This document shows positions 35,770 to 63,316 of a stretch of DNA of 64,000 nt, piece by piece. Source of the DNA: Cyanophora paradoxa CCMP329 (taxonomy: Eukaryota; Plantae; Glaucophyta); NCBI GenBank assembly GCA_004431415.1, contig QPMI01000053.1, positions 1-64,000 on the forward strand, written 5' to 3'. The notes under the pieces are model-generated. The model was not told the origin of the DNA, ran no database searches, and saw nothing but the letters and a program-made list of their open reading frames with translations. Positions within the stretch are counted from its first letter, which is position 1, and each line of letters begins with the position of its first letter. The translations under genes were made by a program, and so were the position numbers.

Positions 35770-36400
35770 TGCTCTTTCTAAGCGACGGGCGCGCCGGACC
35801 TCCTACCTACAGCGCTTTAACTGTACCCGTGCTGTTTGGGTGAGTAGGGCTATGCCTTGCAAGGGTAGCCCTTGCGGTCAAGGCCACTTTTTGGGCGGTC
35901 AAGGGTGCCTTGACAAGGGTGGACTTCGCATCAAGGGCCCCTTAAGGGTTCGCCATACAAAAAATTTGTATGGGAGAGCATGTGCACCGGTACCCCATGA
36001 CCCCCCTACGCAGACCAGATTGGTGGAAAACAGCTTAGTTTTGACCAATAAACGTTGTCTAGATTGAGTGCAAGGTAGTAGATCATGTATCTGATCGAGT
36101 TTATAGCTCTGAGTTGAGTTGCTCTCGAGCTCGCTTCACGTTTTGTATGGCGCATTTTTTGTATGGGGAACCCTTAAGGGCCCTTATTCAAGGGCGACCT
36201 CCGGTCAAGGGTACCTTGTCAAGGACGACCAAACCCTCAAGGCGTACCCCTATGGGTGAGAGCGTAACCCGCAGGGACTGGTGCCCTGATGGAGAAAAGG
36301 GGATGGGAGCCTAGCTAGCTACGAGCTGAGCAGGCGCTTCGCGTCCACACCCGTGCCGTAGCGGATCAGGATGCCCCTGCGAGAGTACGATTACGATCGC
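35770..36400 (-). mobile_element. Fanzor-derived end/omegaRNA-like repeat, copy 1 (interrupted)
   Basis: Same sequence as the copies at 45554 and 50751; split by a MITE. Confidence 0.8.
35845..36252. mobile_element. hAT-type MITE
   Basis: 8-bp TSD TGGGTGAG (35837-35844, 36253-36260); imperfect TIR TAGGGCTATGCCTT / TAGGGGTACGCCTT; related sequence near 24343-24800. Confidence 0.85.
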
Positions 36401-37444
36401 TCAGTGCAATGTGACCGTTAGCGGCGACTTTGAAAAGCCACACCTGCCTGCGCTGCCCGATAGCCGTCAGCTCATAGGTTGACCGCCTGCGCTCAATAGT
36501 GTCCTGCAGGCAGGGAGATGCCGCTGCTGCTCGCTGGGCGCCCGCGCTACGAGGCTTGCGCGACGCGGCCGCGGGGGCGGTGCGGGTCGGTAGGCGGGGA
36601 GTGTCTCGCGGCATTCCAGAACGCTCTTGGATGCTATACTATCACTTCTGGTCCCCGTGCGTCAGTTTGAGTTTGGCGAAACGCGGGCAAGGGTTGTTGT
36701 TCCTGTGATGGCGGCACTGGGCGCGCGTCCCTTTGGCTGTACAACTCGTCAAATTAGCTTTATCAGCGATTGCGGCCAGAAGCGCGCATCTTTGTCGGAG
36801 TTTGATCTCCTACAAAATGGCAGCCAGGCCGTCGTCGAGAAGCTCGGCCTCTCGGGGCCCGTTGCGCTGTTCCGCGAGTTCGATCATCAAGGCAAAGACC
36901 TTTCCTCGTTCTTCTACGCGGCCGATCTCGACTCGAAGGCGCCGGCGGATTTGAAAAAAGCGCGCGACTTTTTCAGATCCTCGCAGATCGGCTACGTGTA
37001 CCGGGCCATCATGCGCAGTGAGCATTTTGCGCATACTTTATTGAGTTCTTTCGGCGCGTGACCGGAGCTCGTGGCGCAGGCGCTCCCTCGGCGGATCCGG
37101 AGTCGCCCAGCCGTCAGCCTGCTGGGGATCCACTGCTGGACGAGTCGCCCACCTGGACGAGTCGCCCACCAGAGGCCTTATTTATGCATGAAATTGCATA
37201 AGGATCCAGCTAGGATCAAGGTCCTGAGATTGCGATTAGATCTAGAGGTGCTGAGGGGCAGCTGCCCACAGATTATGGGGTACAAGTACGATTACGATTA
37301 CGATTACGTCCAATCCGTCACACTCAGTTGCCAATCCCGTCTAACCCGGTCTGACAAAATGACCAGTCTGCTGTAAGCGTGCCGGGAAACTCATGAAGAC
37401 CGAAGGGCCTTCAAGGTGAGCAGGCGCTTTGCCGGATGATGACT

Positions 37445-39829
37445 CTATAATTGACCTTCCGCTTTGAGGGTCTCCAGCTTCTCACGCTCCTTCTCCAAGA
37501 GTTTCTCCTGTGCATCCTTCTGTTGGAGAAAGCGGCTCTGCAAGGACCAATTTGGCAACAAAATCCGTATAGCAGTGACAGGGGAATAACCTTCAGGATG
37601 GGATTTGGTGCCGATGCTGCATGGGAAGCAAGCTGCTCGATTTTGCTTTCGATTGAAGATATGCCCTCCTCGCACGCAGAGACTCGTCGTTTCAGATCTT
37701 CACTCCTGATATAGCTTCATGCCAAATGATTGAAAAAGAAGACCAAAAAAAATCGCACATTTCACGAGTTCTTGGACTCATCTCGCACTGAGCTGTGTTG
37801 CTGTTGTCGGCCCCATCACCTTCCAAGGCCTCACCAATAGCATCGCCATGGCCCTCTATGCCGATCATCAGAACTTGCTCATCGTCATGACCTATGCGCT
37901 TGTGTTGGAATTGTCTGCGGTTTTTCAAGAGGGGGTAGTGAAACCTGATGCAGGCTCTTCCCCAATGGCGGGCTTCTCCGTCAGAAAAGCATCGTCCTGA
38001 GGTGCATGAGATCCTGCTTCTTAACGTGAAACTTACGACAACTCGCACAATCAAATTCTCAAGAAGCAGGTCTCCTCCATCGTCATAGACAGCACCAAGT
38101 TCTTGATGCTCGGTTTGCACCTCAGTCGGAAGCCCTTGTGCAACAGCATCTTCATTACACTCGTTAGACTTCGCTGTGAAATTCGCTGGTTTTGGCACCT
38201 TCCAGAGAGACCTCGCTTTGAATCTGCATATCAGGGTCGAGAGGGGCGAGCTCTGGTGCTGCAGGTTGTTCCGCTGAAGAATCAGTGACTACTGCTCCAC
38301 TTGCCGAAACTGCAGCTGCTGCAAGATCCTTTTTCAAGCGCCGCTCATTCTTTCGCCTGCGATTCAGACACAGAGGGGGTTACAATAAAAGAAAGGGAGG
38401 AGTACATTTGGAGTACTTACTTCCGCTTCTCTTCTTTGCGTTTTTTCCTGATTGCACGGATTCGCCGCCTCTGCTCTTCTTCGGGAAGATTCTGCAGTTC
38501 CGCTTCAAGCTCTGCGCGCTGCAACATGTTCAGCCTGGCAACAATGAACTCAGACATTAACCAAGAACCTGCTCTGAGCTGAGGCGAAGGCTTGCAATCA
38601 GTGCTTCCACGGAAACGAGCTGTTTACTTTGTGCCGCGGGTGTTGAAACTGACTCTGCTCCTGAGGCAGCCGATCCCGTCAATAAGTCTTCATGTGTAGG
38701 CAATGCAGCAGCAGCGTTATCTGGCAGCCATCAGGGTATACGGAGAAATGCATGATGCCTTCCGTACCCAAGTCACTCTTTACGCTCTTCTTCCGTTTTA
38801 ATAATATCGACGCCTGAGCAGCGGGTGTCTCTCCTGCACCGGCCATAATTCCAGAAGCTGTGCTGGCAGTGTCTGGAAGCATGAGCTCATATTGACCCTG
38901 TATTGCAGCGGCAACTTGGTCCATGCCATCTTCCTGTTAAAGAATTCACGACACAAAATCCGGGAGAGTTGTTTCCGAAACTTACAGGAGGAAGAGCGGG
39001 CGATGGTGCCACCGGTGGCTGATTACTCTCATCGACCAATGCGTCTGCACATCAGTTCAGCAAAGCATTCTGTCAGCAAGAGGGATAAGGCTTGTTCACT
39101 TTATATACTCACCAAGTGACATAGCGTCGACTGGGCACTTTTTCTTCTTCTTCTTCTTTCTTGCGGAAGCATTGGCACTGATGTCTTCCTCGACAAGTTC
39201 GTACTCTGGAGCACCGGATCACGGCAAAAGAACAATCGATCTCAAAGACTCCGCACCTATTCCGTCGTTTGCTTGCTTGTTCATGATCCGCAGAAGGTGT
39301 TTTTGAGTTTGGGCGAGGAGAGATTGCTGGGAGCTTCATCAGACACGAACTGCAGACAAATATGAAAAGATACCCACATCAATCTTCTGCCTTGGACGCC
39401 ACCGTCTCCTGCGGATGTCCCGACTGGCAGACGTCAGGCCGTCCTTCCACTCCCCATCCCATGCACCCGGGCCGTCCTCATGTACGACTATCATCTGGCC
39501 GATATCCGAGCTCTTCAGAAGCGTGCCCTTGTCGTACACTTTGTGCGTTTCGACAACACATGGCAGGTCCACAAGATGGCACTGCAAAGTAGTTTCGTTG
39601 AAGCGGAACTGTCCAACTCGACCACCTGTTCACGGCTCGAGGTGCGCGACGATGCTCGCTCGTGGGCGCGCACCCTCGCTGAAGGTGAAGTCCGCGTTCA
39701 TGTCGCCGCCTCTGCGCATCGCCTCCCGCAGCCGCTCCGCCAGCGCCGGCGGAACCCGCAGTACGAGCTGCTCTTCCGCCTGAACGCGTGTGAGCATCCG
39801 ATTGCGTTGTTGCAGCGACGACGCACCAT
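37445..39829 (-). CDS. TAF7: TFIID subunit 7, multi-exon
   Basis: EEQLVLRVP...LVDLPCVVETHK..DK....KSSDIGQMIVV...DGLT....IRRRR; C-terminal NPILK|SRF coiled coil. Middle exons not resolved. Confidence 0.88.
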
Positions 39830-39902
39830 AGATCGCTAGCGGTCTGATCCGTCTGACCGGCCTTCGACGCGTACCCAAATAAACGCTCGACGCTGGGCGA
39901 AG

Positions 39903-40452: not shown

Positions 40453-40883
40453 GTGATCATGAGGGGCCGCGCATGATGATGAGTGATGGGCCGCGCAGGA
40501 TGAGTGATAAGAGTCAGAAGGCGTAATTTTTTTGCAGCAATTTATTTTTATTTGTAGCATCAGGGCCCCTGTGGCCAACATTCCACGCCAACACTAGCTG
40601 TGTCAGAGTCTCAGGGTGGTGGCTGTCGTCTTGGGGTGGCGGCCGAAATTCCTACGGGCTAGCTAGCCGCTGAGCCTAGTAGCCCTTGAGACCTGCCGGG
40701 TGGGCAGCCTGCACCAGAGGCACCTGCCGACCCCGGGGTCCCTATCCGACTGCTCAGCGACCACGCACTCCTGACTGCGATTCGGAGGACAGCCCTCAGG
40801 GCCTACACCCGCTGCCCCTTCAACAAGAAGGCTAGCGCTGCCTCCCTCTTGGGAGGAGGCCCTCGCAAACGGGCTTGTGACAC

Positions 40884-41078
40884 TGCTCTTTCTAAGCGAC
40901 GGGCGCGGCCGGACCTCCTACCTCAGCGCTTTAACTGTACCCGTGCTGTTTGGGTGAGAGCGTAACCCGCAGGGACTGGTGCCCTGATGGAAAAAAGGGG
41001 ATCGGATCCGGAGCCTAGCTAGCTACGAGCTGAGCAGGCGCTTCGCGTCCACGCCCGTGCCGTAGCGGATCAGGATGC
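40884..41078 (-). mobile_element. Fanzor-derived end/omegaRNA-like repeat, copy 2
   Basis: Conserved terminus TGCTCTTTCTAAG and about 195 bp of the family consensus. Confidence 0.8.
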
Positions 41079-41537
41079 GTCGAAAGTTGGACGTCGTAAT
41101 CGCAACGTTAACTTAGTAACTCTGATTCCGATCGTAATCGCAACTCTGATTCCGATCGTAATCGCAACTCTGATTCCGATCGTAATCGCAACTCTGACAC
41201 TGCTCTATTGTTTCCCCCTAAGGGCCCGGTGCATTCCGGGTTCCAGCACGTAGCGTGGCTTTTGCTGCCGTGGGAAGAGCACCCCTGCCCTTTCTAATTT
41301 GAAGTCAGCTTCGAGCATTGGGCGCGAACTGAATTGCAAAAGCGCATCCATAGTTTTTTGGCAACTCATTCTCGAGCGGGCCGCGCTCAATGATGCATTT
41401 CAGACGCGATCGACAACATCTCGACTAGCTGTTCTGACGAGCTGTGCTTCCCGATCCTGCGAAACATTGTACACAGTGAATCGATTTACGACCCAGTAAA
41501 TCGATTTACGACGAATCAAATATGTGCGTACGCTTCT

Positions 41538-42893: not shown

Positions 42894-43178
42894 TGCTCTT
42901 TCTAAGCTACGGGCGCGCCGGACCTCCTACCTCAGCGCTTTAACTGTACCCGTGCTGTTTGGGTGAGAGCGTAACCCGCAGGGACTGGTGCCCTGATGGG
43001 GAAAAGGGGATGGGAGCCTAGCTAGCTACGAGCCGAGCAGGCGCTTCGCGTCCACGCCCGTGCCGTAGCGGATGAAGATGCTCCTGCGAGAGGTCTGTGC
43101 GATCAGTACGATTACGATCGCGATCGGGCGGCGCTGGGAGGGCGAGCCGGCCCTAGGCCTAGACGGAAAATTACGCCG
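42894..43178 (-). mobile_element. Fanzor-derived end/omegaRNA-like repeat, copy 3
   Basis: Family consensus with the same terminus. Confidence 0.8.
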
Positions 43179-43179
43179 A

Positions 43180-43596
43180 AAGTTGACGAGTTGGACGAAA
43201 GTTGGACGAAAGTTGGACGAAAGTTGAACGTCGTAATCGCAACGTTAACTTAGCAACTCTGATTCCGATCGTAATCGCAACTGGACGAAAGTTGGACGAA
43301 AGTGGACGAGTTGGACGAAAGTTGGACGAAAGTTGGACGAAAGTTGAACGTCGTAATCGCAACGTTAACTTAGCAACTCTGATTCCGATCGTAATCGCAA
43401 CTCTGATTCCGATCGTAATCGCAACTGGACGAAAGTTGGACGAAAGTGGGACGAAAGTTGGACGAAAGTTGGACGAAAGTTGGACGAAAGTTGAACGTCG
43501 TAATCGCAACGTTAACTTAGCAACTCTGATTCCGATCGTAATCGCAACGTTAACTTAGCAACTCTGATTCCGGTCGTAATCGCAACTCTGATTCCG
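43180..43596. repeat. Composite minisatellite (GTTGGACGAAA 11-mer plus CGTAATCGCAACTCTGATTCCGAT units)
   Basis: Read directly; same units at 41080-41177 and, inverted, at 62955-63011. Confidence 0.9.
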
Positions 43597-43638
43597 GGCC
43601 GTATTCCTGTCCAACCTATTTGCAAGGAAGACTTTTTT

Positions 43639-44849
43639 CTATTTAAACATTTTCCCAAACATTTCTGCCGTCTTTTTTTTGTATGCCTGCTCTCTGCTTT
43701 GAACTGCTGCAAGCTCACGGTTGATATCACCGTTTTGAGGGTCAATTTTGGCAGCAGCCAGAAGATCTGCTTTGGCCGCGTGAAAATCTCCATTATTGCT
43801 CCGGGCTTGTGCCCTCCGGAAGAGCGCTTTCACACTGTTTCCGTCCATCGAAAGGGCCTTCGAGCAAGCAGTTTCGGCCTCGCGGAACTCGCTCAACTAA
43901 TAAGAGGGTAACGTAAGTTCATTCAGAAACGATCCACGAGATGGTTTGCACCTTCAGCCTTGCTTGGGCAAGGTTCAAGAGAGCGGAACATTTGAGGGCT
44001 GCCGCCTTCGACTTCTGCTCGTCCGAGAAATCGTAGTCCGTCTCAAGCACTTGGACAGCGGCGTCGTATCGCTTTGCAGCTTCCGCGAAAGCGCTTTCCT
44101 TGTAGAACTTGTTTCCAAGGTCCTTCCTATGAGTCAAGGGGTAAGGGTTAAGGAGGCTATATAGCTAGTGGCGGGGCGAGCGGGCACACCGCTTTTCAGC
44201 TGCATCAATCTTCTCATCAGGGCTCATTTCCCAGGTTTCTTTTTCATACCCGGGCTCCGGCTTCACGATCTCGAAAAGTTCGATGTCGAACTGAAGAGCA
44301 GCATCCGGCGGGCTGTCGCAGTTGTCAGAGCGAAAATCAAAGCCTCGGCTTTTCGGCCTCGAATCCGAATGAAGACCCGGCCTCATCAAAAATGCTTCAA
44401 CACACACATTTTTGGGGGGCTGCCGGTCTTTCCATAAGCATACTCAGGGGAAAGGATGAAAGTGGCCCGCTCTCCCACCTGGCGAAACATGAGCCCAATG
44501 CGCCGACAACATGAGCCCAATGCGCCGAGAGTACACTGCCCGCTTGTTTCTAAATTGGTTTTAGGCTGGCTTCGAATTTGACTTCGCCAGTCCTTCTTGA
44601 ATTCGGGGTCAAGTGGAGCTCCCGTACCTGCATCGTCGCGACGCCCTCATCCCATCCGCGAATCACCCGGCCTTTTCCCAGCTGGAATTCGAAAAGCTCG
44701 GCGCGGTCGCGCGAGGAGTCGAATTTTGTCCCATCGAGGAGCGTTCCCGTGTAGTGAACGCGCACTTTGCAGCCCGCAACTGGCTTCTCGCCTTCGCCCG
44801 CGGACAGCAGCTTCTTCTTCATCTGCTCGAGCTGAGTACCGGGCTCCAT
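43639..44849 (-). CDS. FKBP-type peptidyl-prolyl isomerase with TPR domain (FKBP4/5/62-like)
   Basis: [19 protein letters not shown]...[12 protein letters not shown]; KDLGNKFYK; [10 protein letters not shown]. Confidence 0.93.
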
Positions 44850-45553
44850 GCGCGCGCCAGCACAGAGTTACGAGTTACCGCGCCGTCCGCGTACGTAATC
44901 CAGTCTCCGTCCATCGTTGGATGTAGCGCCGGCGGCTGCGCACGCCCGGTCGTCAGCACGGCGGCGACGTTGTCACAGTGTCGATTTCAGTAGCCCCGAA
45001 GCGTACGCGTCGCGCTAGCTATATATATAGACGTCTAAACGGCGCCACCTGGGCAACTGCCGCCGGACTTTCTCGAACCTTCACGAGGGCTGTACCCGGT
45101 GAGGAGTTCTACCCCCTCAGCAGGTACCTGGGGTACCACCACGTATGCGTAGCAAGGTTCGTCTTTGATCGATATCTGCGATTACGATTAGGCTGTCCTT
45201 GGTGCACGTGAGCACATCCCACACCTGTAGCCGGAACTCGGGAGTACGTGTCCAAATGCGCGTCCTGGCCTGGGACAGGCCTAAGCAGTTCCCCAGCCCG
45301 TCTGCAACCCCGGCCCCAGATAGCTCCAGCACGCGTACGTTCTTAAAGCTTTAATTTCCCAGATCTAGACCTCATGATAAGTATATATTAGATCTATAGC
45401 TAGATCTGAGGACTCCGGGATCCGGGAAGAGAACAAGTACTAGTTGGACGGCGGAAGCTTATGGCCAGACCTCTTAATTATCTATATAAGCTTTGATTAC
45501 GATTACGATTCGGCGATTAATATTGGGGGTTGCATTCGATTCGATTGCGGACA

Positions 45554-46140
45554 TGCTCTTTCTAAGCTACGGGCGCGGCCGGACCTCCTACCTCAGCGCT
45601 TTAACTGTACATGTACCCGTGCTGTTTGGGTGAGAGCGTAACCCGCAGGACTGGTGCCCTGATGGAAAAAAGGGAATCGGAGCCTAGCTAGCTACGAGCT
45701 GAGCAGGCGCTTCGCGTCCACGCCCGTGCCGTAGCGGATCAGGATGCCCCTGCGAGAGGTCTGTGCGATCAGTACGATTACGATTGCGATCGGGCGGCGC
45801 TGGGAGGGCGAGCCGGCCCTAGACGGAAAATTACGCCGTGGATAGGCCGTGTCGGGACTAGGCGGGGGGAGCAGCGATTGTGTATAGGCGTGTATAGACA
45901 CAACACGCACCGCGCGGCGCCGCCGTCGCGGTCCGCCCGGAAGCCGCACCCGGGGCGGCACTCGAAGACCCTCTTCGAGCCGAGCGTGTAGTTGATCTTG
46001 CCGCACATCCCGCACGTCTTCGAGGTCCAGGCCTCGAGCTCGCAGACGAGCTGGAGCGTGCATGGCGGGTCCTCGTCCTTGGGGTGCCGCCGAACGGCGT
46101 GCTGCAGGAGCTGCCGGAACCTGCGCCAAATAAGCATCAT
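45554..46140 (-). pseudogene. Fanzor2/TnpB 3' remnant plus downstream omegaRNA-like end, copy 4
   Basis: MMLIW..FRQLL...EAWTSKTCGMCGKINYTLGSKRVFECRPGCGFRADRDGGAARCVL: zinc ribbon and RuvC-III of IS607-type TnpB/Fanzor2. Confidence 0.88.
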
Positions 46141-46361
46141 CGATTACGATTGGGGCGTCTGCATAATTAGGACGTCTTAGCTTTCGTGATATATCATATC
46201 ATAGTACGTGAAACCCAAAATCGACGACGGGGGCGAGGACCTTCATTCAGGGTATATTTGGATCTTGAATTGAAATAAAAGTAATCTACAATCCCAACCT
46301 GAGACGTCTACATGGGAAGATATAACTCGATCCAGCCGCCGCAGGAGCTGATGCTAACTCT

Positions 46362-46730
46362 AAATTCTTGTCTAGCTGATGCTTGGAGCTAGCTGATCGT
46401 AATCGTAATTCTTGTCTAGCTGATGCTTGGAGCTGATCGTAATCGTAATTCTTGTCTAGCTGATGCTTGGAGCTGATCGTAATCGTAATTCTTGTCTAGC
46501 TGACTCAGTGATGCTTGGAGCTGATATATTGCTCTTTTCTTGAACAAGGGACCGGCCAAACGTTTAACAGTGAAATGTATAAAGAGCGATATTATCACTG
46601 GTGGGCCCCAACAGTCCAATTGTGCATGCGCATGGCCACCCGCCATGCGGGCCAGGCTGATCGTAATCGTAATTCTTGTCTAGCTGATGCTTGGAGCTGA
46701 TCGTAATCGTAATTCTTGTCTAGCTGATGC
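46362..46730. repeat. 40-bp tandem repeat (CTTGTCTAGCTGATGCTTGGAGCTGATCGTAATCGTAATT), interrupted once
   Basis: About 4 units, a ~130-bp unique stretch, then about 2 units. Confidence 0.9.
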
Positions 46731-46993
46731 TATAGCTAGGGCCCTTGGAGTGCACCCCCTACTCCGGCACTAATACTCCAATCTACCCCTATACCTAGAT
46801 TGCAGTTGTTCAACTCCAGGTAGAATAGTTTGTGTAGCAAATTCCAGGCGTCGTGGGGCGCGTCCTGTGAGCAAACAACTCATAAAAGGGGGTCTGCCAA
46901 TCGGCTGAGCTGGTCGGGCACGGCCATTTTGGACTTTTGTGCTGCTGCGGAAGTCGCGTCGCGAAACCATTTCTTTTTCGCCACTCGGGCAAC

Positions 46994-47303
46994 TGCTCTT
47001 TCTAAGCTACGGGCGCGCCGGACCTCCTACCTACAGCGCTTTAACTGTACCCGTGCTGTTTGGGTGAGAGCGTAACCCGCAGGGACTGGTGCCCTGATGG
47101 GGAAAAGGGGATGGGAGCCTAGCTAGCTACGAGCCGAGCAGGCGCTTCGCGTCCACGCCCGTGCCGTAGCGGATGAAGATGCTCCTGCGAGAGGTCTGTG
47201 CGATCAGTACGATTACGATCGCGATCGGGCGGCGCTGGGAGGGCGAGCCGGCCCTAGGCCTAGACGGAAAATTACGCCGTGGCTGGGCCGTGTCGGGACT
47301 AGG
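46994..47303 (-). mobile_element. Fanzor-derived end/omegaRNA-like repeat, copy 5
   Basis: Shares diagnostic variants with copy 3. Confidence 0.8.
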
Positions 47304-47890
47304 CTCCATGCGCGCGCCAGCACAGAGTTACGAGTTACCGCGCCGTCCGCGTACGTAATCCAGTCTCCGTCCATCGTTGGATGTAGCGCCGGCGGCTGCG
47401 CACGCCCGGTCGTCAGCACGGCGGCGACGTTGTCACAGTGTCGATTTCAGTAGCCCCGAAGCGTACGCGTCGCGCTAGCTATATATATAAACGGCGCCAC
47501 CTGGGCAACTGCCGCCGGACTTTCTCGAACCTTCACGAGGGCTGTACCCGGTGAGGAGTTTCACCCCACTAAGTGCGAGTCCTAGCCATCTTAATCTTTG
47601 ATTTCTATATATATATATAGAAGCGTCTGTCAGATCATGCACGAGCCCCTAATCTCCCCAGGGGTCCCCGTACCGAGGATCACTCGGCACATTCCCGCCA
47701 CCATCATCGACCAACGCCAATGGCCGCCGCCGATTGCTCGAATCCGCTAGCGCTAGCAGGCTGCGGGCGCTCGAATTTGAGAGCGGAAGAGGAACTTCGG
47801 ACTCCGAGAGGAAGCTTGAACTTGGAGGGCAGCGCCGGGGCGGCGAAGCTGGGGCGGCGCCGGGTCGCTGTAAGATAATTGATACACGAG

Positions 47891-49024
47891 TTATATCATA
47901 CTGCCCGAGTGGAGGACATCAATCATGTTGAAGACACGTTGACCAGTCCTCTCAGCAATCTTGCTGGCAAGAAACAGGACGGCATCGACAGAACCCTCGC
48001 AGTACACATTTCGGCCGCACACATTGTGCTTGAACTCGAAGCTGACGGTCCCATCCGGAGAGATAAGCGAGTAGGTGTGGAAGGCATGTCCCAGCAAGAA
48101 CTCTTCTGGAACCTGCATTTGAGAGACCTGGCTGACGGGATCACGGACCTGCAATCAATGTGAGCTCGCGGCATCTAAAGGATAAGAATAGAAAATCTTA
48201 CCATCTCAATGTCATCAACGTCAAACTTCTCGACACCCAGCTTCTTGAATGAAGCAACCACTGCCTTTGCTGTTCCGGATGTGTCTGCCTTGCTGGACTG
48301 TCGAAACAAGTTACAAGTTCGCCACATGGAGGCGCAGATTGACGCAGAGGATGAGCACCTGGTGCGACTCGACAACTTTGAGCTTGTACCCCGAAAACGC
48401 CCCCGGAAACTCGTTCGCCATGTACTCCATCATGGCCTGAAAAGCGACGATCTGCTTGCCCATGTTCGGAGCAATCACGCAGTAAATTTTGCTATCGTTG
48501 ACGATTTTCATCAGAGCATCCCGATCTCCTCCAGTCGTTCCCATGACAAAAGGAACGTTGTGCTGGCCCGCCGCCCTTGAAATCAGATCCCGCTCGACCT
48601 CAACACGCGCATATCTAGAGCCTCAGCCTCAGACCTTCACGTAGAATTCCGCGTTCGGGATGACGGCGGTGGGATGAGTGTAGTCGACAGCTATCAGTGA
48701 AGGGAAGTCCTGTTTGATGGCATCGATAGCTCCTTCGCGCTGCGCGGGGTCGGGACAGAGAAATGTACGACGAGGTTCCCCAAGGCACCACAGAGGGACG
48801 CAAGAGCTTGACGTCGACGCCGCCAATGTCGCAGGAGGCGGTCTGAACATCCTCCCCAGTGAGCGAATACGGAACGAGCGTCAGGCCGCGCCGAAGGACA
48901 GCTTTCGAAACGTCGATGCTACGGACGCCTCAGCCAGCCGGCAAGCGACACGGAACGCCGGCCACGCGCACCCCATCTTGCCCGGAGCGCCGTTCACCAT
49001 GACGGGCGGCTTGCTAGTCGCCAT
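47891..49024 (-). CDS. dapB: 4-hydroxy-tetrahydrodipicolinate reductase (plant/algal-type), multi-exon
   Basis: VMVNGAPGKMG; AVDYTHP; FVMGTTGGDR; VIAPNMGKQIVAFQ; ESHQ|SSKADTSGTAKA; GHAFHTY; HNVCGR. Confidence 0.93.
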
Positions 49025-49396
49025 AGCCTCGAAAACAACGCGCGCCTCGACTATTAACGGAGGCCCTCAGCGGCGCGTCATGCAGGGACCGCGTCGGGCG
49101 CTCGCCTACCGCGAGGGGACGAGCGGGGACGGTTGCTGGCGCGAAGGGCCAGGCCTGCGAACCCAGAGCAGGCCGATCCGAGAGAGGATGAGCTCCTCTG
49201 TCCGGGGTGGAGCGCGGCGCTGCAGAAGGCCATTCGGTCTCGTCTGGTTTGTTGGATTGCGGCGTCGAACACGCTGGATCGTCGACCTGGCGCGCTTCCG
49301 CGACGACGACGGACCGCCGAGGGACCGAGGGTACCACGGGGGGTACGCGCTCTTCCCGGTTCTCCCGGCGTCCCGGTTCTCGCCGCGCAGCCGCGA

Positions 49397-50504
49397 ATGT
49401 TCCGCGCAGCCGCCTCGCTTCTGAAGAAGGTTTGCAACCAGGAGAGCGCGCCTGTGGGAGCGACAGCAAAACGTCGTTGACCTTGCGCGCCGCAGGAGCT
49501 GCCCGCGGCCGCCGCCGCGGGAGTGGCCCTCGCCGCGTTCGGAGGTGCCACGGCATTTGCTTCGGATGACTCCCTGCAGCCGCCTTTCTACCCGTGGTCG
49601 CACTCGGGGCCCCTCAGCGCGTTCGATGCCGCCAGGTCAGCTGGATCCCCGCCCTCGCTGTGCGGCCTCTTGCCGATGCACTTGTACTCTGCAGCATTCG
49701 TCGCGGGTTCCAGGTGTACAAGGGCGTGTGGTGCGGCTAACGACTATCGCTAGCGTGTGCCGCGCCACTTACGCCGGGCGCCTTCGCAGTTCCGCCTGCC
49801 ACAGTATGGACCGCATCGCCTACCGCAACCTGATCAACGTTTGCTACACGGAGGACGAGGTGAAGGCGCTTGCCGCCGAGATTGAAGTGAAGGATGGCCC
49901 GAACGACGCTGGCGAGATGTTCATGCGCCCCGGCAAGCCGTCCGACAAATTCCCGCGGCCATACGCGAACGAGCAGGCAGCGCGCGCTGCGAATGGCGGC
50001 GCCTACCCTCCGGACCTGTCGCTGATCATCAAGGCCCGGGCCCGCCGCGAGGACTACGTCTTCGCGCTCCTTACCGGCTACAAGGAGCCTCCCGCGGGTG
50101 TCACCATCCGCGAGGGCCTCCACTACAAGTGCGCGGTAGGCCCACCGCTCTGCTTCGCAACTCACAACATATTTCGCAGCCCGTACTTCGCTGGTGGCGC
50201 CATCTCGATGGCGCAGCCGATCTACGATGGCAGCGTCGAGTATGATGATGGCACCCCGAACACTGCGTCCCAGATTGCAAAGGATGTCGTCACTTTCCTG
50301 GCCTGGGCGTCTGAACCGGAGGCCGATGAGCGCAAGAAGGCGGGGCTCAAGTGGATCGGCACCCTCTCCATCGCTCTTCTCGCGACTGCGTACTACAAGC
50401 GCTTCCGCTGGAACGTCATCAAGTGTGTCCTTGTGTCTTGCTCGATCTCTCGTCATAGCTACTAATGCTTTCTCAGGAATCGCCGCCTCGAGTTCAAGCT
50501 TTGA
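49397..50504 (+). CDS. CYC1: Cytochrome c1, mitochondrial
   Basis: [12 protein letters not shown]; spliced VCSACHSM heme motif; [13 protein letters not shown]; [14 protein letters not shown]. Confidence 0.97.
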
Positions 50505-50750
50505 AAAAAATGTATCTCAATCCAGCCACACTTGGTACAGTGTTGTGTTCTATCTCAATTCATTCGCACGATCAAAGACACCAGATTATGAAAGCTTAAA
50601 TCGTGATCAAGAAGTCTAGTTCAGGTCTGATCACAAGTGCACTGCGGCTTTCACTGAGTCAGGCCACGGAGACGTCTGCACCAATGGTCCAACCCCTTGA
50701 TCGCTAGATAGATATAGCTAAAGCTCGAGTCGGGCAGGAATCCGTCTAAA

Positions 50751-51320
50751 TGCTCTTTCTACGCTACGGGCGCGCCGCACCTCCTACCTACAGTGCTTTA
50801 ACTGTACCCGTGCTGTTTGGGTGAGAGCGTAACCCGCAGGGACTGGTGCCCTGATGGAAAAAAGGGAATCGGAGCCTAGCTAGCTACGAGCTGAGCAGGC
50901 GCTTCGCGTCCACGCCCGTGCCGTAGCGGATCAGGATGCCCCTGCGAGAGGTCTGTGCGATCAGTACGATTACGATTGCGATCGGGCGGCGCTGGGAGGG
51001 CGAGCCGGCCCTAGACGGAAAATTACGCCGTGGATAGGCCGTGTCGGGACTAGGCGGGGGGAGCAGCGATTGTGTATAGGCGTGTATAGACACAACACGC
51101 ACCGCGCGGCGCCGCCGTCGTGGTCCGCCCGGAAGCCGCACCCGGGGCGCCGGCGGCACTCGAAGACCCTCTTCGAGCCCAGCGTGTATACGTAGTTGAT
51201 CTTGCCGCACATCCCGCACGTCTTCGAGGTCCAGGCCTCGCAGACGAGCTGGAGCGTGCACGGCGGGTCCTCATCCTTGGGGTGCCGCCGAACGGCGTGC
51301 TGCAGGAGCTGCCGGAAAGC
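50751..51320 (-). pseudogene. Fanzor2/TnpB 3' remnant plus omegaRNA-like end, copy 6
   Basis: FRQLLQHAVRRH...EAWTSKTCGMCG...FEC...CGFRADHDGGAAR. Confidence 0.88.
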
Positions 51321-52572
51321 GGAAAGCAGAAGCCCTGATCGCCGTCGGTTCAACGGTTACCGTAGTACCGTACGCGTAGTACTTACTAGTTAACTTAGTA
51401 AGCTTATAATTACAGCCAGCGCTAGCGCTAGTACTCACTCGAGCTCAAGCTTAGTACCGGATCGCAACTTGCAACATTGCAATTGAACAAACTCGGCCTG
51501 TGACACGCGTCTACGGGTACAGCACACACTACGTGCATACGGCACGACTTCGACGCTGTGAACATACGGCATGCGGCCAGGGATCATCGGATCGGACGGG
51601 GTCCGCACCGCAGCCACCGGCGGCGCCGAGGCGCTCGAACCATCGACGGCATGCTCGATTTCGACATCGTCGTCGACGTCGATCACGATCTCGATGTCGC
51701 CGAGCTCCATCGGTGCAGGCGAGGGCGCGCCGCCAGCCCCCCCACCCGCAGCCCGGCCGCCGCGCCAGCAGCAGCCGCCGAGCCCGCGCCCAAGCTTGGC
51801 GCCCTGCGCAGCGAAGGGAACGAGGAAGTGAGGGAGCGACTGCCAGAGTCCCAGAACGGGGCGCAACCGGGAAACCAGTTCAGGCCGGCACTGCGGCACG
51901 CGCGGCGCACGCGCACACGTGGCACGCAACCGCGCTCGGCGCGCGCCGATGCAGCGCGACAGATCGCGATCGAACCGGTTCGCGAAACAAGTTGCGCCGA
52001 TGCGCTCGATACATCACGACAGATCGAACCGGTTCGCGAAACGGGCCGCGACAACTTGCAAGCTGCGCCACCGCGCTGGCCCGATCCAGCATGACCATAG
52101 CTACGCGCATGACCGCGGTCGCCGATCGGGTAACCGCCGCTGTTGACGGTTGACCAGCACAGGGGGTACAGTCAACCTCAGATATACTATGATCCATAGC
52201 TATAGTGCACGTGCTCGTTCGGTCCATGCACATCATGGCATGCGCTCTAGCGTCGAACACGCTGGATCGTCGACCTGGCGCGCTTCCGCGACGACGACGG
52301 ACCGTCGAGGGACCGACGAGGACCCGTCGAGGGTACCACGGGGGGTACGCGCTCTTCCCGGTTGAGCCGGTCCCACAGCGCGCCCGTGCGCTCCAGCAGC
52401 CCCCGCATCGGCTGCTGCCGCAGGATTGCAATATTGACGCATGCGCGCGCGGCAGCGGGGCTTTCGAGTCTGCGACTCGGCGGTCGCTGCCGGGTTGCAG
52501 ATTTGAGGGGTACAGCACACGACAGGAGACCGCTCGAGCGCAGGTTAGATCCCAGCGTGGGGAGGCTGCAGA

Positions 52573-55500
52573 ATGGAGATAAGCAGCGTAAACTCAGAGA
52601 TAGGGCGAGCGGCGTTTTCATTTTTCGGCCCTGGCGAGATCGAGCGCATCAGCGTGAAGCAGCTGCGGAATCCAGTTCTATTTGATTCACTAGGGCGACC
52701 GTCGCCGGGGGGTCTCTACGATCCCGCGCTGGGGCCGATCGACAAGCACGCGAGGTCCGCGCGCCCGAGCACCAGCGCCCCAGTGCTATGAGCGCTTCCT
52801 CGGGGCAATGAGTACCGCGTACGCGCGCTGATCGAGCTTATGCGCAGTTGCTTGACGTGCGGTTTGAGCGCCACACAGTGCCCCGGGCACCTGGGCCATG
52901 TCCGCCTATCCGCCCCTGTATTCAACCCGCTCCTCATCACGATGCTCTTCAAGCTTCTGCGTTTGAAGTGCTTCTCTTGTCATCGCTTGCGCATGCATCG
53001 AGTTCGGGTCCGTTCCTGCTCGCGATTGGACGTCAGTCCCGGATCAAATCTGAGTTGCGCAATGCAGGTTGAGCGTTACTGGGCGCGCCTGCTTCTTCTG
53101 GACATGGGTCGAGTTCTAGAAGCGCACGAAGTTGCTATGCCGCGCACCCACAGCCTCGATGAGAAGCCGCGGCAGAGGTCTAGCAAGAAGGACGAGGAGG
53201 CGCCGGCTGCTGAGGTCGCCGAGCCAGCAATCGAGGATCTGGAAGCCGCATCGCGCGAATTGCACGACCTTGTAGGTCTGCGTGCGGTGGGGTTGGCTGA
53301 CGCGGCGATAGCTGAAACACACCCATGCAGACCGAATCCTGTCCGGAGGATACGATCGAAGTGGGCGCAAGCTTGCGCATGTCGCGGAAGCCTGGCGGGC
53401 TACGATGGCGGATTTCATGCAGCACGTACCTGCACGCAAGTGTGAAAATTGCGGGGCGTGCGTCCCTCCCCTTGCATGCATCCTTTGCACCTGTTGATCT
53501 CTCGTTCAGCATATCTCCAAGCCTTCGGAAGGAGGGAGTAAAATTCTTCCAGAATGCTTTGACAGAGAAAGACCGAAGAGCGAATTCCTTGATCGGGCGT
53601 GATGCACCGTCAGTCTGGGGGTCTAGCAGCCTTTCAATGACTGCCCAGGAAATCACAGCAATGGTAGGGATCACTCGCTTTCCCGAGAGCCTTCCTTCTT
53701 CGAATCTGAATGAACAAATGCAGCGCGTGTGTGCTACTGGAAGAGTGGATGCCGTTGTAGAAGAGGTCGGCAAGAATGTGACCGAAAAGAACACTAAGAA
53801 GAACAGCTCGGTTTCCTCTCGCTTCCTCAGCCCCTTCGAAGTCCATCGGCACATACAGCTCCTTTGGAACGAGGTGAGCGGATTGATTATACGTGCCACC
53901 GGAGTGTTCCTTTTCATATTCGGCCCAGGAACGGCTTGTTCTGGATGAGATGTTCGGGTCGCTGTCAGAGTCAGGTTCGGTCGATTGGCGAATCGCTATG
54001 TTTGTCGGCGTCTGTTCACGGTGCCAGTTCTTTGGCAGGACGGAGCTCTTCACCGGATATGTTTTTCATCCAGGTCATGGCGGTTCCTCCATCACGGTTT
54101 CGTCCACCAGCACGCATAGGCGATCTCACCTTCGAGCATCCGCAAAATGTGTCCTTCTCTAAGATCCTTCAGGTACTTTTTCTCTCCCTTGAAAGACTCT
54201 CATTTACTGACTCTCAGTACTCCTTTAGGCAGACTCGCATCTCTTGCAGACACTGGGGGTCCCTTCCTCGAAAGCAGCAGCCGCTTCAGAGCCCCCTTCC
54301 GTAGATATTGGATTCGTTCACGAGGCGTAAGCTTCTATCCCATTCCAAAATGAAAGCCTTTCCAACCCGACATCACAGATACGTCCAACTTCAGCTTGCG
54401 GTGAACAGTGTGATCGACTCGACCAAGGGGTCAGCCGCAGACAGCGGGGGCTTGAAGAAGACCGACGATGCAAACGGTATAAGGCAGATTCTGGAAAAGA
54501 AGGAGGGGCTCTTCCGCAAGAACATGATGGTGGGCCATCACTGGGGGGTCAAATCTGTTCCTTGTTTCTGATTTTTGCGACAGGGCAAGCGTGTCAATTA
54601 TGCAGCGAGATCAGTCATCTCTCCCGATCCCTACATTGCCACAAATGAGATTGGCCTGCCGCACTATTTCGTGACACGATTGACATATCCGGAGGGAGTG
54701 ACTCAGCACAATGTGGTCAGAGAGCACATATTTCTGCCCCGTGCTTATCGTTTCTGTTCAATGACGCCGTTTATCCAGGAGCATTTGCGGCGATGTGTCA
54801 TCAATGGCCCCCACAAGCACCCAGGGGCGAACTTCATAGAGTTCGAGGATGGGTACATATTGCATGCATTCCGGTTTTTTCTTCTGATGTAGCTGATGCT
54901 GCTCCAGACATCGAATCGATTTGAGCACACGGAACGAGACACAGAGGATGGGATTGGCGAAGCAGCTCCTAACCAAGAATCAAATGGATGGAACAGAGGT
55001 TAGAAGTCGCAACAAGAGGGTGTTTCGTCACGCGGACGATGGCGATATTCTCTTAGGTAACACTTTTTAATTACTGCACAATGGCCTTTCGATTCTTAAA
55101 GCCTCTGCAGTCAACCGCCAGCCTACGTTGCACAAACCATCGATGATGGCACACCGACTTCGCGTGGTGCGGGGCTCAGGGCGCCATGATAAGACAATCC
55201 GCATGCATTACGCCAACTGCAACACCTATAACGCGGACTTCGATGGTGCCCACCCTGCCCCCTATCTTGGCAGAGCTGTTGCTAATGTTATTCTGCACAG
55301 GTGATGAGATCAACGTGCACTTGCCACAGTCAGAGCTTGCGAGGGCTGAGGCATACAACATTGCTGACACCGACCACCAGTACACCGTCCCCACTTCTGG
55401 CCGCCCAATCAGAGGGCTCATTCAAGACAATGTTGGCACGGGCGTCCTCCTCACATTGAAGGACACGTTCCTCACAAAAGAATTGTTTATGCAGGTGCCA

Positions 55501-59920: not shown

Positions 59921-59966
59921 GACTGCGTGTGCTGTGGGTGGTGTGAATGCCATGGCTGTGCTTATC

Positions 59967-60661
59967 GCGTTTGGACACGTACTAAAAATGCAGGTCCGGG
60001 CTACAAGTGTGGGATGTACACTGCGGCCACTGTAGCCGCGGGCCCAGCCCACCGGGGGGAAACCATTGAACAGCTGGGCCGGCAACAGCGAGGGTCGCAC
60101 CTCAGTCTGATTTGCATTAGCACATCCGTACAACAATGAAGTCGTAATGTCGACCATACCCTCATGATCACGTGCACTGAAAACCGCGAGGGCCGCACCT
60201 TCCGGATCCTATCTGTCGGTCCATATGTCCAGCCCAGATTGTCGTCGGTCGCGTCTGAAATGCGAATAGCCCAAGCATACTATGATACGTATACATGTAC
60301 CAGATGGTATATATACGTAGCACGGATCTGCATACGTAGCCGCGGCGCATATTCATGTAGGCGATCGTTGTACCCCGAAGCGGCCAAAAGAAACTTGGAA
60401 GTGCCTGGGAGTGTATGTAAGCTGTGCAGCTACATTACGAGAACGATCCCACAGCCGAGAAGAGCGGTGAGTGCCGAGCCGAATAGTCCGAATAGTTCTT
60501 TAGCGTGTGCATTTTTGCGCGACACGGGATGTTTGCACGGCACGCCCTTATTTAGCTACGCGCTAGAGCTCAAGAGCCGAACCCTAAGCTCGCTGGTGGG
60601 CTGGGCCCGCGGCCGCGGCGGCGCAGTGCACATCCCACACTTTAAGTACGTGTCCAAATGC
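59967..60661. mobile_element. TIR-family element with unrelated internal sequence
   Basis: Inverted GC(G/A)TTTGGACACGTACT ends and arms. Confidence 0.7.
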
Positions 60662-61606
60662 GAACCGCGCAAGCATACGCGGGAGCAGCTGCCAGTGGCA
60701 CACAGCTTAGCAAAGCTGTTTGATGAGCTCCTAACGCGCAAGAAGGGCGCAAGCTTAAATGCACGGGCGTGCAGGTTCAGCTCAAGAGCCGAAGATAGTC
60801 GAGTAAGAGCCTTCACGACTAAGAGCCCTCCGCGGTTATAGATCGCGCCCTTTTTATTTGCAGTCATCAAGCAGCTTTGCTAAGCTGTATGCCACTGCCA
60901 GCTGCTGCTTAACTAGCCGCGCGTATGCTTGCGCGGTTCTAGCTAAGCTGCGTGCCGCAGGCAGCTGCGAAACGGGCAGCGCCACCGGGCAGTTCATTTG
61001 ATTCAAGCTATGGAATCAGCAGCGACGTGGGAAAGGCCAAGGGCACAGCGACGGGTCGTCGGTAACGAGGGAACGTCGATTTTGAGGAGGCCACAGAACC
61101 AAAGGAAGGACCCGAAAGCGAGCGCGGGGGGTTTCTGGATGAATGAACGTCTTTACGGGAAGCCTGATCCGAACCCGTTGTCCGGCACAACCGAATACAA
61201 AGATTCGATCAGGGGGTCGGTTCTTATTGAAGTACAAATCGAAATCGTACCCGGTTTGTCTGACTTCCCTGGTTTCTCGTAGGGGAGCCCTTCCTGATCG
61301 CCGTGACCCTGCAAATTTGGGGCTCTGTGTGCATCCAGTTTTGGAGCCCTTGCCCCCGGAGATTCCAGCAAATGCCCCGAGTGGCGCCAATGCGTTCTTC
61401 ACAACAAGCTACAGGGTCAGCACACGATATAGCTTTCATTTGTGCTAATTTTAATTTGATTTCATAGATGGACTTCGGCCGTGGTGGTTCTTATCTGACG
61501 AAGGAAGAGAATGACGTTTTTGGAAGGAGCGTAAAAAATGCGTACTCAACGCCAAAATAGGTCACCTATATGCCGAGCTGTATTCACGGTTGAAGGCAAC
61601 TAGCTC

Positions 61607-62953
61607 GCATTTGGACACGTACTAAAACGCAGGTCCGGGCTACAAGTGTGGGAATGTACACTGCGGCCGCCGCGGCCGCGGGCCCAGCCCACCAGGGAGC
61701 TGGCCGGCCAGGCCCTGCATGGCCTTCGAAGGGAGTAATGCCATGATGCGCCTCCCCACGGACACTGTGGCTAGCTAGAGCTACAGGTGCCCGCATGCAC
61801 GGCGTGGTGCTGCATCGCGTCTTGAGGCGGCGGGGGTCGTTCTCGGGGCGGTGGCGGGAGCCCCTACGGGCCCCGGGGGGGGCCCGACATGGAGTCAGCC
61901 TGCGGTCGGCGCCGGGGGGGGGGCGCGTCATGAGCCCTGATGAGAAGATTGATGCAGCTGAAAAGCGGTGTGCCTGCACGCCCCGCCACTAGCTATATAG
62001 CCTCCTTACAGTGCAGCTAGAAGCTTTACTGGCCCAGCCTGACTCAAAAGTTCGGACCTCCCGAGTCCAAGGCTTGGGCGTGTCTTATACATACTCTTCT
62101 TCTTCCCGAGTCCAAGGCCTTGGGGTCCTTCAAGGCTTCGCCTTTGTGCCTTGGGCCTTCGGGTCCTTCGCCTTTCGTCAAAACCGCACGGCCCGCTTGG
62201 GTGTCACACACACGGTGTGTCTTATACATACTCTTCTTCTTCTTCTTCCGAGTCCAAGGCTGGACTGAGGAGATCCGAGGTAGTGAGAGGAGCAGGCACT
62301 CACAGGCTAGGCCTAGGCTCTGGATCTCTGACCTAGGCTAGGCTCCGAGGCTCGCGGCCCTGAATCGAAATTGTAATCCGATCGATGATCCAATATTAAT
62401 GATCATCAGATCGACTTTGCGAATCATTGAATGGCCCGGCCCAGCCGCAGGGCCCGGGCCCGGTACTGGTGGCACTGCGGCAGTGGAATCTGGAGCGCCA
62501 GGCCCTGGGGGTCACATGGGTCAACGCATATAATCCAACCGTTGAATTTCGGAACCTCAGACCGTCGGACGTGCAATTGCACTTAATAATTTACTACTAA
62601 GTTAAGCTCAATTCCGCCAAACCTCGTCCAACCCTCTGTCCAACGAAGTCCGACTACACTACTAGGCTAGTACTTTGAACTAACCCTGATCGCAACGAGG
62701 GCAACGAGGGGATGCAGGTGCGGGATCCGGAGCCCCACTTGACCCTGAATTCAAGAAGGACTGGCGAAGTCAAATTCGAAGCCAGCCTGAAGCCGAGACA
62801 ACCCCCACCGCCACAAGACGCGATGCAGCACCACGCCGTGCGGGCACATGTAGCTATAGCTAGCTATATAGCTAGAGTGTTCATGTCCGACGGTCCGCAG
62901 GGAGGCGCGCGCATTACTTGATCTCCTTAGGGGGCCACGCAGGGCCCGGCCCG
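61607..62953. mobile_element. TIR-family element enclosing FKBP gene fragments
   Basis: Forward arm 61607-61925, inverted partial arm 62791-62953; FKBP-matching pieces abut both arms. Confidence 0.65.
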
Positions 62954-63011
62954 GAATCAGACTCTGAGAGTTACTAAGTTAACGTTGCGATTACGACGTC
63001 CAACTTTCGAC

Positions 63012-63200
63012 GCATCCTGATCCGCTACGGCACGGGCGTGGACGCGAAGCGCCTGCTCAGCTCGTAGCTAGCTAGGCTCCGATTCCCTTTTTTCCATCAG
63101 GGCACCAGTCCCTGCGGGTTACGCTCTCACCCAAACAGCACGGGTACAGTTAAAGCGCTGAGGTAGGAGGTCCGGCCGCGCCCGTAGCTTAGAAAGAGCA
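63012..63200 (+). mobile_element. Fanzor-derived end/omegaRNA-like repeat, copy 7
   Basis: Opposite orientation to the other copies, ending TTAGAAAGAGCA. Confidence 0.8.
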
Positions 63201-63316
63201 TACTGAGCACATAATAAGAACACGCAAGACCGACGCCTGCTTCTGATTTCTGTACACTGAGAGCAACTGCAGGCCGCAGCACAGCCTGGCGATTTGATTG
63301 GATCTAGACTGCCCGC

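Follow-up and report, generated by a model that had tools for sequence, protein, structure and literature searches.

Fanzors are eukaryotic RNA-guided nucleases that are under development as genome editors, and their natural role is unclear. The Chlamydomonas Fanzor elements CRe-1, CRe-2 and CRe-3 combine 5′ truncation and internal deletions with intact 3′ ends, a pattern termed ‘3′-overabundance’ (Bao and Jurka 2013, PMC3627910). The mimivirus protein L79 is the Fanzor2 nuclease ApmFNuc; the Fanzor guide-RNA region lies 3′ of the open reading frame (ORF), reaches into it and ends at the right end of the element, and the catalytic site is rearranged, with Pro or Gly at the canonical RuvC-II position and an alternative Glu ~45 residues downstream (Jiang et al. 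2023, PMC10530073). Bacterial gene-less IS200/IS605 derivatives (PATE-like elements) encode guide RNAs that are used in trans (Meers et al. 2023, 10.1101/2023.03.14.532601), and a giant endogenous virus of Chlamydomonas carries full-length Fanzors, copies described as ‘Fanzor gene plus right-end guide only’, two-ended non-autonomous copies and fragments (10.1101/2024.09.03.611062). Here we analyse a set of Fanzor-derived sequences in the glaucophyte Cyanophora paradoxa CCMP329, in a stretch of 64,000 nt (contig QPMI01000053.1, positions 1 to 64,000 of the forward strand), which we call the window. An initial annotation had interpreted seven such sequences as a dispersed set of omegaRNA-like guides. 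We consider it likely that they are instead right-end modules of one high-copy Fanzor-carrying DNA transposon family, either gene-less or with a remnant of the gene.

Seven right ends with a common terminus

An exact search for the sequence TAGAAAGAGCA recovers all seven proposed positions, strands and common ends, six on the minus strand (35770, 40884, 42894, 45554, 46994 and 50751) and one on the plus strand (ending at 63200). When one mismatch is allowed there are nine matches, against 0.94 expected, and no shuffle reaches nine; the two additional matches, at 18664 and 41286, were rejected as copies because the surrounding sequence is unrelated. Repeat finding, BLAST and MAFFT agree that the terminal ~189–195 nt, here called the core, is present in seven of seven copies at 93–99.6% identity, as the annotated ~190-nt tail implied, and a hidden Markov model of the core (nhmmer) finds no additional good copy in the window. 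The terminus pattern was not found in viral contigs. The core consists of the last Fanzor exon (57 coding nt, 19 codons) with its stop codon, followed by 133 nt of non-coding sequence that run to the invariant terminus, and it starts within about 3 nt of the first base of that exon. The 40-nt 3′ flanks of the seven copies are mutually unrelated and are the same as those quoted in the initial annotation. Each copy lies in different DNA, so each represents a separate insertion.

The 5′ extent is as variable as had been claimed, with lengths from ~190 to 567 nt: ~225 nt in c35770, ~190–240 nt in c40884 and c63200, 285 nt in c42894, 310 nt in c46994, and 566 and 567 nt in c45554 and c50751. All independent 5′ breakpoints leave at least 188 nt, and the commonest breakpoint is the start of the last exon. 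The copies, and one weaker look-alike, are arranged as follows.

35770..35844, minus strand: c35770, 3′ 75 nt of the right-end core, to the terminus TAGAAAGAGCA
35845..36252, no strand: 408-nt insertion splitting c35770, resembling a miniature inverted-repeat transposable element (MITE), outside the Fanzor family
36253..36400, minus strand: c35770, upstream part of the core (last exon) and ~30 nt of the last intron
40884..41123, minus strand: c40884, 190-nt core and 45 nt found otherwise only in c63200, followed by a minisatellite of 24-nt units
42894..43178, minus strand: c42894, right-end part of 285 nt, the core and part of the last intron
43179..44841, no strand: 1.66-kb segment in place of 24 nt inside c42894
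44842..45115, minus strand: c42894, left-end part of ~270 nt, boundary at 45115 (GGGGTAGAACTCCTCACCGGGTACAGCCC...)
45554..46119, minus strand: c45554, 566 nt
46994..47567, minus strand: c46994, complete 574-bp non-autonomous element
50751..51317, minus strand: c50751, 567 nt
62967..63200, plus strand (the sole plus-strand copy): c63200, 189-nt core at 63012–63200 and the 45 nt common to c40884
31881..31978, minus strand: possible diverged right-end relic, ~65% identity to core positions 93–189

Two copies retain a left end. Left parts of ~270 nt are common to c46994 (47302–47567) and c42894 (44842–45115), and both open with GGGGT(G/A)(A/G)AACTCCTCACCGGGTACAGCCC at sharp boundaries beyond which the outer flanks differ. 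The one adjacent motif that these two left-end flanks suggest is CTNAG (n = 2). In c46994 the left part abuts the last intron midway along its length at an internal junction, and the right part (46994–47304) carries the partial last intron, the last exon and the 3′ region. Because both of its boundaries are sharp and its left end is common with c42894, c46994 is a complete 574-bp internal-deletion derivative, and c42894 is likewise a complete derivative of this kind. The right 285 nt of the two are 99.65% identical yet both outer flanks differ, which led us to reject a segmental duplication as the origin of the cluster. The 1.66-kb segment within c42894 opens with the minisatellite at 43168–43600, and parts of it are found again upstream of c63200.

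The remaining copies break at shared positions or are interrupted. In c40884 and c63200 the same junction at the exon start is joined to minisatellite-bearing DNA, which next to c40884 spans 41094–41202; c40884 also carries GGATCC as a +6 footprint, and an A>C change alters its segment CCGTAGC. The copies c45554 and c50751 end at the same nucleotide (46119 and 51317), and the DNA upstream is unrelated. Beyond this base, RNA contigs of other copies run on into ...ARQALDCRHYE, so the position is a truncation point or an exon boundary and not the gene start. The insertion that splits c35770 is bounded by imperfect terminal inverted repeats of ~16 nt (TAGGGGTACGCCTTG.../...CAAGGCATAGCCCTA) and flanked by a target duplication of 8 bp, CTCACCCA, seen as an overlap of core positions 67–74; it may be of hAT type. 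The look-alike at 31881–31978 resembles the last ~95 nt and also ends in ...AGAGCA; the match is weak (nhmmer E 0.014, with one of 300 shuffles equalling its alignment score), and it could represent an ancient right end belonging to a related family.

Three of the seven copies adjoin minisatellite arrays. Minisatellites at 41094–41202, 43168–43600 and 46344–46731 are built from 24-nt and ~38–40-nt units around TCGTAATCG, and ATCGTAATCG occurs 26 times, against 0.04 expected; these include one occurrence in the last intron of each Fanzor copy that has this intron.

The Fanzor gene and its affinities

The initial annotation had assigned a nuclease coding tail to two copies. Both c45554 and c50751 indeed encode ...FRQLLQHAVRRHPKDEDPPCTLQLVCE(LE)AWTSKTCGMCGKINYTLGSKRVFECRPGCGFRADRDGGAAR, and the Cas12f1-like TNB zinc-ribbon domain (PF07282) scores above its gathering cut-off of 26.3 bits in each, with 34.5 bits (E 2.4e-8) in 45778–46140(−) and 31.3 bits (E 2.4e-7) in 50970–51353(−). 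The CxxC...CxxC zinc ribbon is present as TSKTCGMCGK...FECRPGCGF. In c45554 the TNB/RuvC-III exon remnant (45910–46119) has an in-frame +6 insertion (CTCGAG) and is followed by the last intron (~45752–45909, GTGCGT...CAG), the last exon (45695–45751) with its stop codon, and a 133-nt 3′ region with a +6 insertion, ACATGT. The remnant in c50751 (51102–51317) has two in-frame +6 insertions and a DRD motif mutated to DHD; c45554 keeps DRD and the alternative Glu. No copy in the window has a complete RuvC triad in one frame, RuvC-I being absent.

The nuclease exon by itself served as query against 1.84 billion representative proteins; for the last exon, the comparison was made via database proteins. 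The best true matches of the nuclease exon are short proteins of 89–97% identity and cluster members of 235, 643 and 1087 aa, all of them EukProt gene models of Cyanophora paradoxa. The 1087-aa model, P0157, contains all three catalytic motifs: RuvC-I as VVIDPGVKT; MVIAPEF, where Pro occupies the canonical RuvC-II position, together with the alternative Glu of CEAWTSKTC; and RuvC-III as ADRDGGAAR. P0157 and the model P0002 read MVIAPEFRTSQM...(44 aa)...CEAWTSKTC, and the L79 region around E467, NEYLTTKTC, aligns to CEAWTSKTC. Both models thus have the rearranged catalytic site of Fanzors, as opposed to that of prokaryotic TnpB.

A tblastn comparison, which the initial annotation had recommended, matches P0157 to the window over just its last ~85 aa, and a relaxed tblastn finds no upstream Fanzor exons in the window. 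The 19-aa last exon is found in seven of seven copies, which, with PF07282 in two, bears out their Fanzor origin. The intact Fanzor postulated elsewhere in the genome has a counterpart in the full-length P0157 model from the same species, and RNA contigs containing a spliced junction and an upstream exon indicate that the Fanzor mRNA is expressed and spliced.

The database models P0002, P0154 and P0157 continue past the RuvC-III motif as ...GGAAR-S/G-I-F/L-IRYGTGVDAKRLL(G/S)S. In the window this tail lies ~160 nt beyond the nuclease exon, after GTGCGT...CAG, which means that the RuvC-III motif is interrupted by an intron. The splice is also seen in transcripts, as an RNA contig end at 51102 joins directly to AGCATCTTCATCCGCTACGGCAC (element strand). 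The peptide GGAARC, which had been taken as a sign of an atypical subfamily, is an artefact of reading through this intron, the spliced protein being DRDGGAAR|G/S-I-L/F-IRY.

The intron also bears on the origin of the truncated copies. A fixed 3′ end, a variable 5′ extent and a commonest 5′ boundary at an exon start could suggest retroposed 3′ ends of the Fanzor mRNA, processed or resembling short interspersed elements, that were 5′-truncated by incomplete reverse transcription. However, four copies keep the last intron, there is neither a poly(A) or simple-repeat tail nor a target duplication, two copies share a defined left end that lies outside the mRNA 3′ region, and the DNA upstream of the c40884/c63200 boundary is unlike the upstream exon. 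We disfavour this reading and regard it as highly improbable.

Mimivirus L79 (9b0l) is the top PDB match of the protein tail and also of P0157 (E 3.7e-6 and 1.3e-5), and no Fanzor1 structure matched either of them at E up to 1. A profile built from the C-terminal half of P0157 and its nearest full-length relatives matches L79 over its full length at 1.6e-69, compared with 1e-20 to 1e-31 for TnpBs. The alignment of P0157 itself to the profile of its relatives covers the C-terminal ~150 residues only (146 columns); the model contains a long insert of low complexity, its N-terminal half is not alignable, and no HTH_OrfB domain was found in P0157. One relative, P0021, sits among F-box/ankyrin genes, which are typical of giant viruses. 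The ‘Fanzor2’ label of the initial annotation is therefore plausible as far as the closest solved structure is concerned, with P0157 itself placed only through its C-terminal ~150 aa. From sequence comparison, Fanzor2-like is a plausible best label for the family, and the placement covers that C-terminal part.

Copy number, transposon ends and mobilisation

Two DNA and two RNA contig sets were compared with 48401–52400, and copy numbers were estimated from the DNA depths; the stretch is present in twenty public runs, all from one organism. The single-copy DNA depth baseline is 41–79. Summed contig depth is not equal to true copy number, and the copy figures below are orders of magnitude.

Core positions 62–195: summed DNA depth 10.8k–19.8k, ~250 copies
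Last intron: summed DNA depth 1.9k–3.2k, ~40 copies
Nuclease exon: summed DNA depth 0.45k–1.2k, ~10 copies

Per genome, these depths suggest some 250 cores, about 40 last introns and about 10 nuclease exons. The density of about one copy per 4 kb that had been given for this region holds locally; averaged over the genome, summed contig depth would put it closer to one per 400 kb.

The ends of the element do not correspond to those of Helitrons or of transposons with terminal inverted repeats. The left end, GGGGTGAAACTCC, is unrelated to the reverse complement of the right end, TGCTCTTTCTAAG, so no terminal inverted repeats are present. No target duplication is found at c46994 or c42894, no direct repeats of at least 9 nt occur between the 3′ flank and the upstream junction in any of the seven copies even with an offset allowed, and 7–8-mers common to these two places are at chance frequency. 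The inverted repeats and fixed-length duplications of Tc1/mariner, hAT and similar transposons are thus missing. The hallmarks of Helitron and Helitron2 elements, in their ends, 3′ hairpin and insertion site, are likewise missing. The ends GGGGT... and ...GAGCA differ from the Helitron 5′-TC/T and 3′-CTRR, and as single-stranded DNA the last 80 nt have a folding energy of −8.7 kcal/mol, where shuffles average −10.6 (z +0.98), with an unremarkable subterminal hairpin at the left end (z −1.36). The 3′ flanks, which begin with G, G, A, T, G, T and T, are neither T^T nor T-rich.

The copy pattern itself does resemble a described one. Both the copies in the window and the depth gradient of ~250:40:10 show 3′-overabundance with 5′ truncation and internal deletions, identical to the pattern of Bao and Jurka (PMC3627910). 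It could reflect a Helitron2-type rolling-circle passenger, as for CRe-1/2/3, with the 3′-anchored series produced by one-ended or read-through transposition. Two complete copies lacking inverted repeats and target duplications, head-to-tail clustering on the same strand, the listing of Helitron among Fanzor2 partners by Jiang et al. (PMC10530073) and a loose 10/12 inverted match, by eye only, between left-end positions 8–18 and right-end positions 33–45 all fit such an element. The terminal sequences, the lack of a strong 3′ hairpin and the flanks do not, and the seven copies lack the variable 7–19-bp target duplications that follow a T-rich tetranucleotide in CRe-1/2/3; nor is a linked RepHel encoded in the window. 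We regard a Helitron2-type origin as a genuine possibility, if a doubtful one.

IS607 is the classical Fanzor2 partner, and the family could alternatively be IS607-like, moved from a few master copies by a serine recombinase. The C-terminal grouping with Fanzor2-like proteins, the PDB and full-length profile matches to L79 given above, the position of P0021 and the lack of target duplications would all agree with this. Against it, no serine recombinase is found in the scanned window ORFs or in the P0157 model, the 5′-truncated copies are left unexplained, and the mimivirus element has inverted terminal repeats (PMC10530073), which the ends here lack. On balance an IS607-like family appears unlikely.

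The 9-mer CGGGTACAG occurs 12 times in the window, against 0.31 expected, and lies within both Fanzor ends, 51–59 nt from the terminus on the right and 18–26 nt from the boundary on the left. It is also part of a separate ~100-nt repeat (...GCAATTGAACAAACTCGGCCTGTGACACGCGTCTACGGGTACAG...), with sites at 19309–19349, where it forms a hairpin with a 9-bp stem, 34537–34635 and 51468–51564. It may be a common, putative transposase-binding motif.

For the transposon family that we favour, we propose that the copies would be mobilised in trans by a transposase encoded elsewhere, without a target duplication and without a need for terminal inverted repeats. The right end would be retained because it is needed in cis, and the different flanks would simply be insertion sites. 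The same end would also overlap the region that gives rise to the Fanzor guide-RNA scaffold, so that any sense transcript through a copy would carry a flank-derived ‘guide’. Such a guide would be a by-product of the TnpB/Fanzor build, as in bacterial gene-less IS200/IS605 derivatives, with no dedicated array. The claim that the loci are non-autonomous applies to most copies, which are gene-less or have a decayed nuclease exon.

Several observations weigh against this proposal. No transposase is encoded in the window, and five of the seven copies lack a recognisable left end, for which one-ended transposition, truncation or later rearrangement are all conceivable. The common break of c45554 and c50751 (46119/51317), with different DNA upstream, is not explained by simple decay. 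Six of the seven copies lie on the same strand within 15 kb, at ~100 times the inferred genome density, and the copy numbers rest on summed contig depths, which are not true copy numbers. In addition, no breakpoint leaves less than ~188 nt, and the whole 190-nt module, not just a short end, could be functionally required.

Short insertions recur among the repeats of the window. Eight of nine distinct 6-nt indels among repeat copies convert a triplet X into X-revcomp(X)-X (GAG>GAGCTCGAG, TAC>TACGTATAC, GCC>GCCGGCGCC, ACA>ACATGTACA, TCC>TCCGGATCC, AGG>AGGCCTAGG), at 45606–45611, 41003–41008, 46033, 45954/51xxx, 45988/51xxx, 47253, 24125 and 62711–62788. Two such indels are in unrelated repeat families and three are in frame within decayed nuclease exons. 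A single 8-nt indel, in the 23749–24223 repeat, has the form X-C-rc(X)-G-X (CGA-C-TCG-G-CGA). Indels of 6 nt are over-represented (11 listings, compared with 1 to 5 each for lengths 2 to 5), and they resemble excision footprints of the hairpin type from a transposon whose target duplication is 3 bp.

The interval between host genes at 35.7–48 kb is largely transposon debris. Elsewhere, a ~330-nt GC-rich repeat (ATTTGGACACGTACTAAAACGC...GGGGGCCCGACATGGAGTCAGCCTGCGG) is present in three copies, at 18176–18500, 32190–32483 and 61609–61932; it is a separate family and was rejected as a second Fanzor end. Flanking the cluster on its left side, two inverted repeat pairs (23788–24223 with 34132–34550, and 25298–25481 with 37453–37626) lie ~10–12 kb apart at 93–100% identity, and could represent the two arms of a larger inverted duplication, or a single transposon present twice. 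The host genes are listed below.

34556–35119, plus strand: COQ9-like exon
48401–49339, minus strand: spliced host gene
49494..50824, plus strand: cytochrome c1 gene with five or more introns of 51–66 nt, gene proper 49494–50505, mRNA to at least 50824
52573–53445, plus strand: N-terminus of the RNA polymerase largest subunit

Evidence on guide RNAs and known relatives

The core overlaps the end of the ORF and stops at the right end of the transposon, which is the position of an omegaRNA. To this extent the annotation was correct: the common part, the last exon plus 133 nt to the boundary, is an element right end located exactly where a Fanzor or TnpB guide scaffold is expected (PMC10530073). 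The predicted structure is unremarkable. The minimum free energy of the core with 20 nt of flank is −69.2 kcal/mol, compared with −69.8 ± 4.3 for shuffles (z 0.13). RNAalifold of six cores does place the proposed pairing segments, GCTACGG/CCGTAGC and ACGGGCG/CGCCCGT, in a long-range closing stem. This pairing exists as a prediction and is not rarer than chance, since 5% of whole-core shuffles and 20% of end-preserving ones attain the duplex energy between the first and last 40 nt (p ~0.05 and 0.20). None of the 58 predicted pairs covaries among the six full cores, copies that at 93–99% identity are too alike to show covariation. Two copies have an uncompensated change in CCGTAGC, one has a change in adjacent terminal-stem residues, and no Rfam match is found over 62700–63300.

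RNA evidence consists of assembled contigs, which do not display RNA ends. The sole RNA seen crossing a terminus is at c50751, where a contig is spliced at GT..AG (plus strand) from the preceding cytochrome c1 exon and then runs over 50477–50824, across the terminus at 50751 and past the cytochrome c1 stop codon at ~50503. Since this RNA is spliced to a cytochrome c1 exon, c50751 is antisense within the transcribed 3′ untranslated region of the host gene, and the transcript runs on the strand opposite to that of a guide. Over the core, summed RNA depth is 5–9 times that of the cytochrome c1 exons, a value pooled over hundreds of loci.

These results bear directly on the suggestion that the gene-less right ends are dispersed guide-RNA genes, each made of a scaffold and a 15–20-nt guide from the flank, used in trans by an intact Fanzor. 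The scaffold position, the full-length Fanzor model with its catalytic residues and expressed, spliced mRNA, the RNA depth over the core, the breakpoints that all spare at least 188 nt and most often fall at the last-exon start, and the precedent of bacterial gene-less derivatives (10.1101/2023.03.14.532601) are in its favour. The folding, covariation and Rfam results are not, nor are the uncompensated stem changes and the antisense RNA at c50751. Moreover, the gene-less copies have no evident promoter, the RNA depth is summed over ~250 copies, many of them probably within host transcripts, and each guide fits its own flank only, with no obvious targets except homing to its own empty site. Varied flanks at a fixed terminus are seen in any multicopy transposon and therefore lend no support to a guide set. 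We conclude that the dispersed guide set as annotated is not upheld by these data, and we judge dispersed guide-RNA genes to be quite unlikely. It is less likely still that the ~250 gene-less modules are transcribed and loaded in trans onto a few intact Fanzors as a distributed, flank-derived guide library. Were this so, a eukaryotic nuclear genome would hold such a library, with possible consequences in the homing or retention of non-autonomous copies and in the cutting or regulation of host sites such as the cytochrome c1 3′ untranslated region.

The transposon family favoured here can be set against four described systems. PATE-like elements are the known analogue of guides acting in trans: they too are non-autonomous, keep their ends and the guide-encoding right end, and would need the nuclease and transposase in trans. 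In contrast to the Cyanophora copies, they are prokaryotic and have both subterminal hairpins and a defined adjacent motif, and covariation models back their guide RNAs. The Fanzors of the Chlamydomonas giant virus resemble the present family in their mixture of gene-bearing, non-autonomous and fragment copies, but they are Fanzor1 elements with Tc1/mariner transposases, in a viral genome and at low copy number.

Among solved structures, the protein matches mimivirus ApmFNuc best (L79; 9b0l), and it has the same rearranged site, with Pro in APEF and CEAWTSKTC supplying the alternative Glu. In both, the conserved non-coding DNA on the 3′ side reaches back into the ORF and stops at the right end (PMC10530073). 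Unlike ApmFNuc, the Cyanophora gene has introns, one of them within RuvC-III, its motif reads DRDGGAAR-G/S-I instead of DRDxNAAxNI, and P0157 has the low-complexity insert and unalignable N-terminal half described above. The TnpA serine recombinase and inverted terminal repeats of the mimivirus element were not found in the Cyanophora family, with the scanned window ORFs and P0157 covered for the recombinase.

No paper linking Fanzor with Cyanophora was found in the literature searched, and the family thus adds a glaucophyte example: intron-containing, expressed, with a Fanzor2-like protein, gene-less right ends numbering in the hundreds and, in at least one case, a clean non-autonomous element of 574 bp. 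It provides material for asking if guides from gene-less copies reach the nuclease in trans, and what transposase mobilises Fanzors without inverted repeats or target duplications. The family differs from CRe-1/2/3 in its glaucophyte host, in a protein tail closest to the Fanzor2 type, and in having no TC/CTRR ends, 3′ hairpin, variable target duplications or T-rich target. Like them, it is a high-copy algal DNA transposon with an intron-containing, expressed Fanzor gene, whose 3′ terminus is kept in nearly all copies. The finding is ordinary transposon anatomy; elements of this kind have been published, and their copy pattern was described for Chlamydomonas in 2013.

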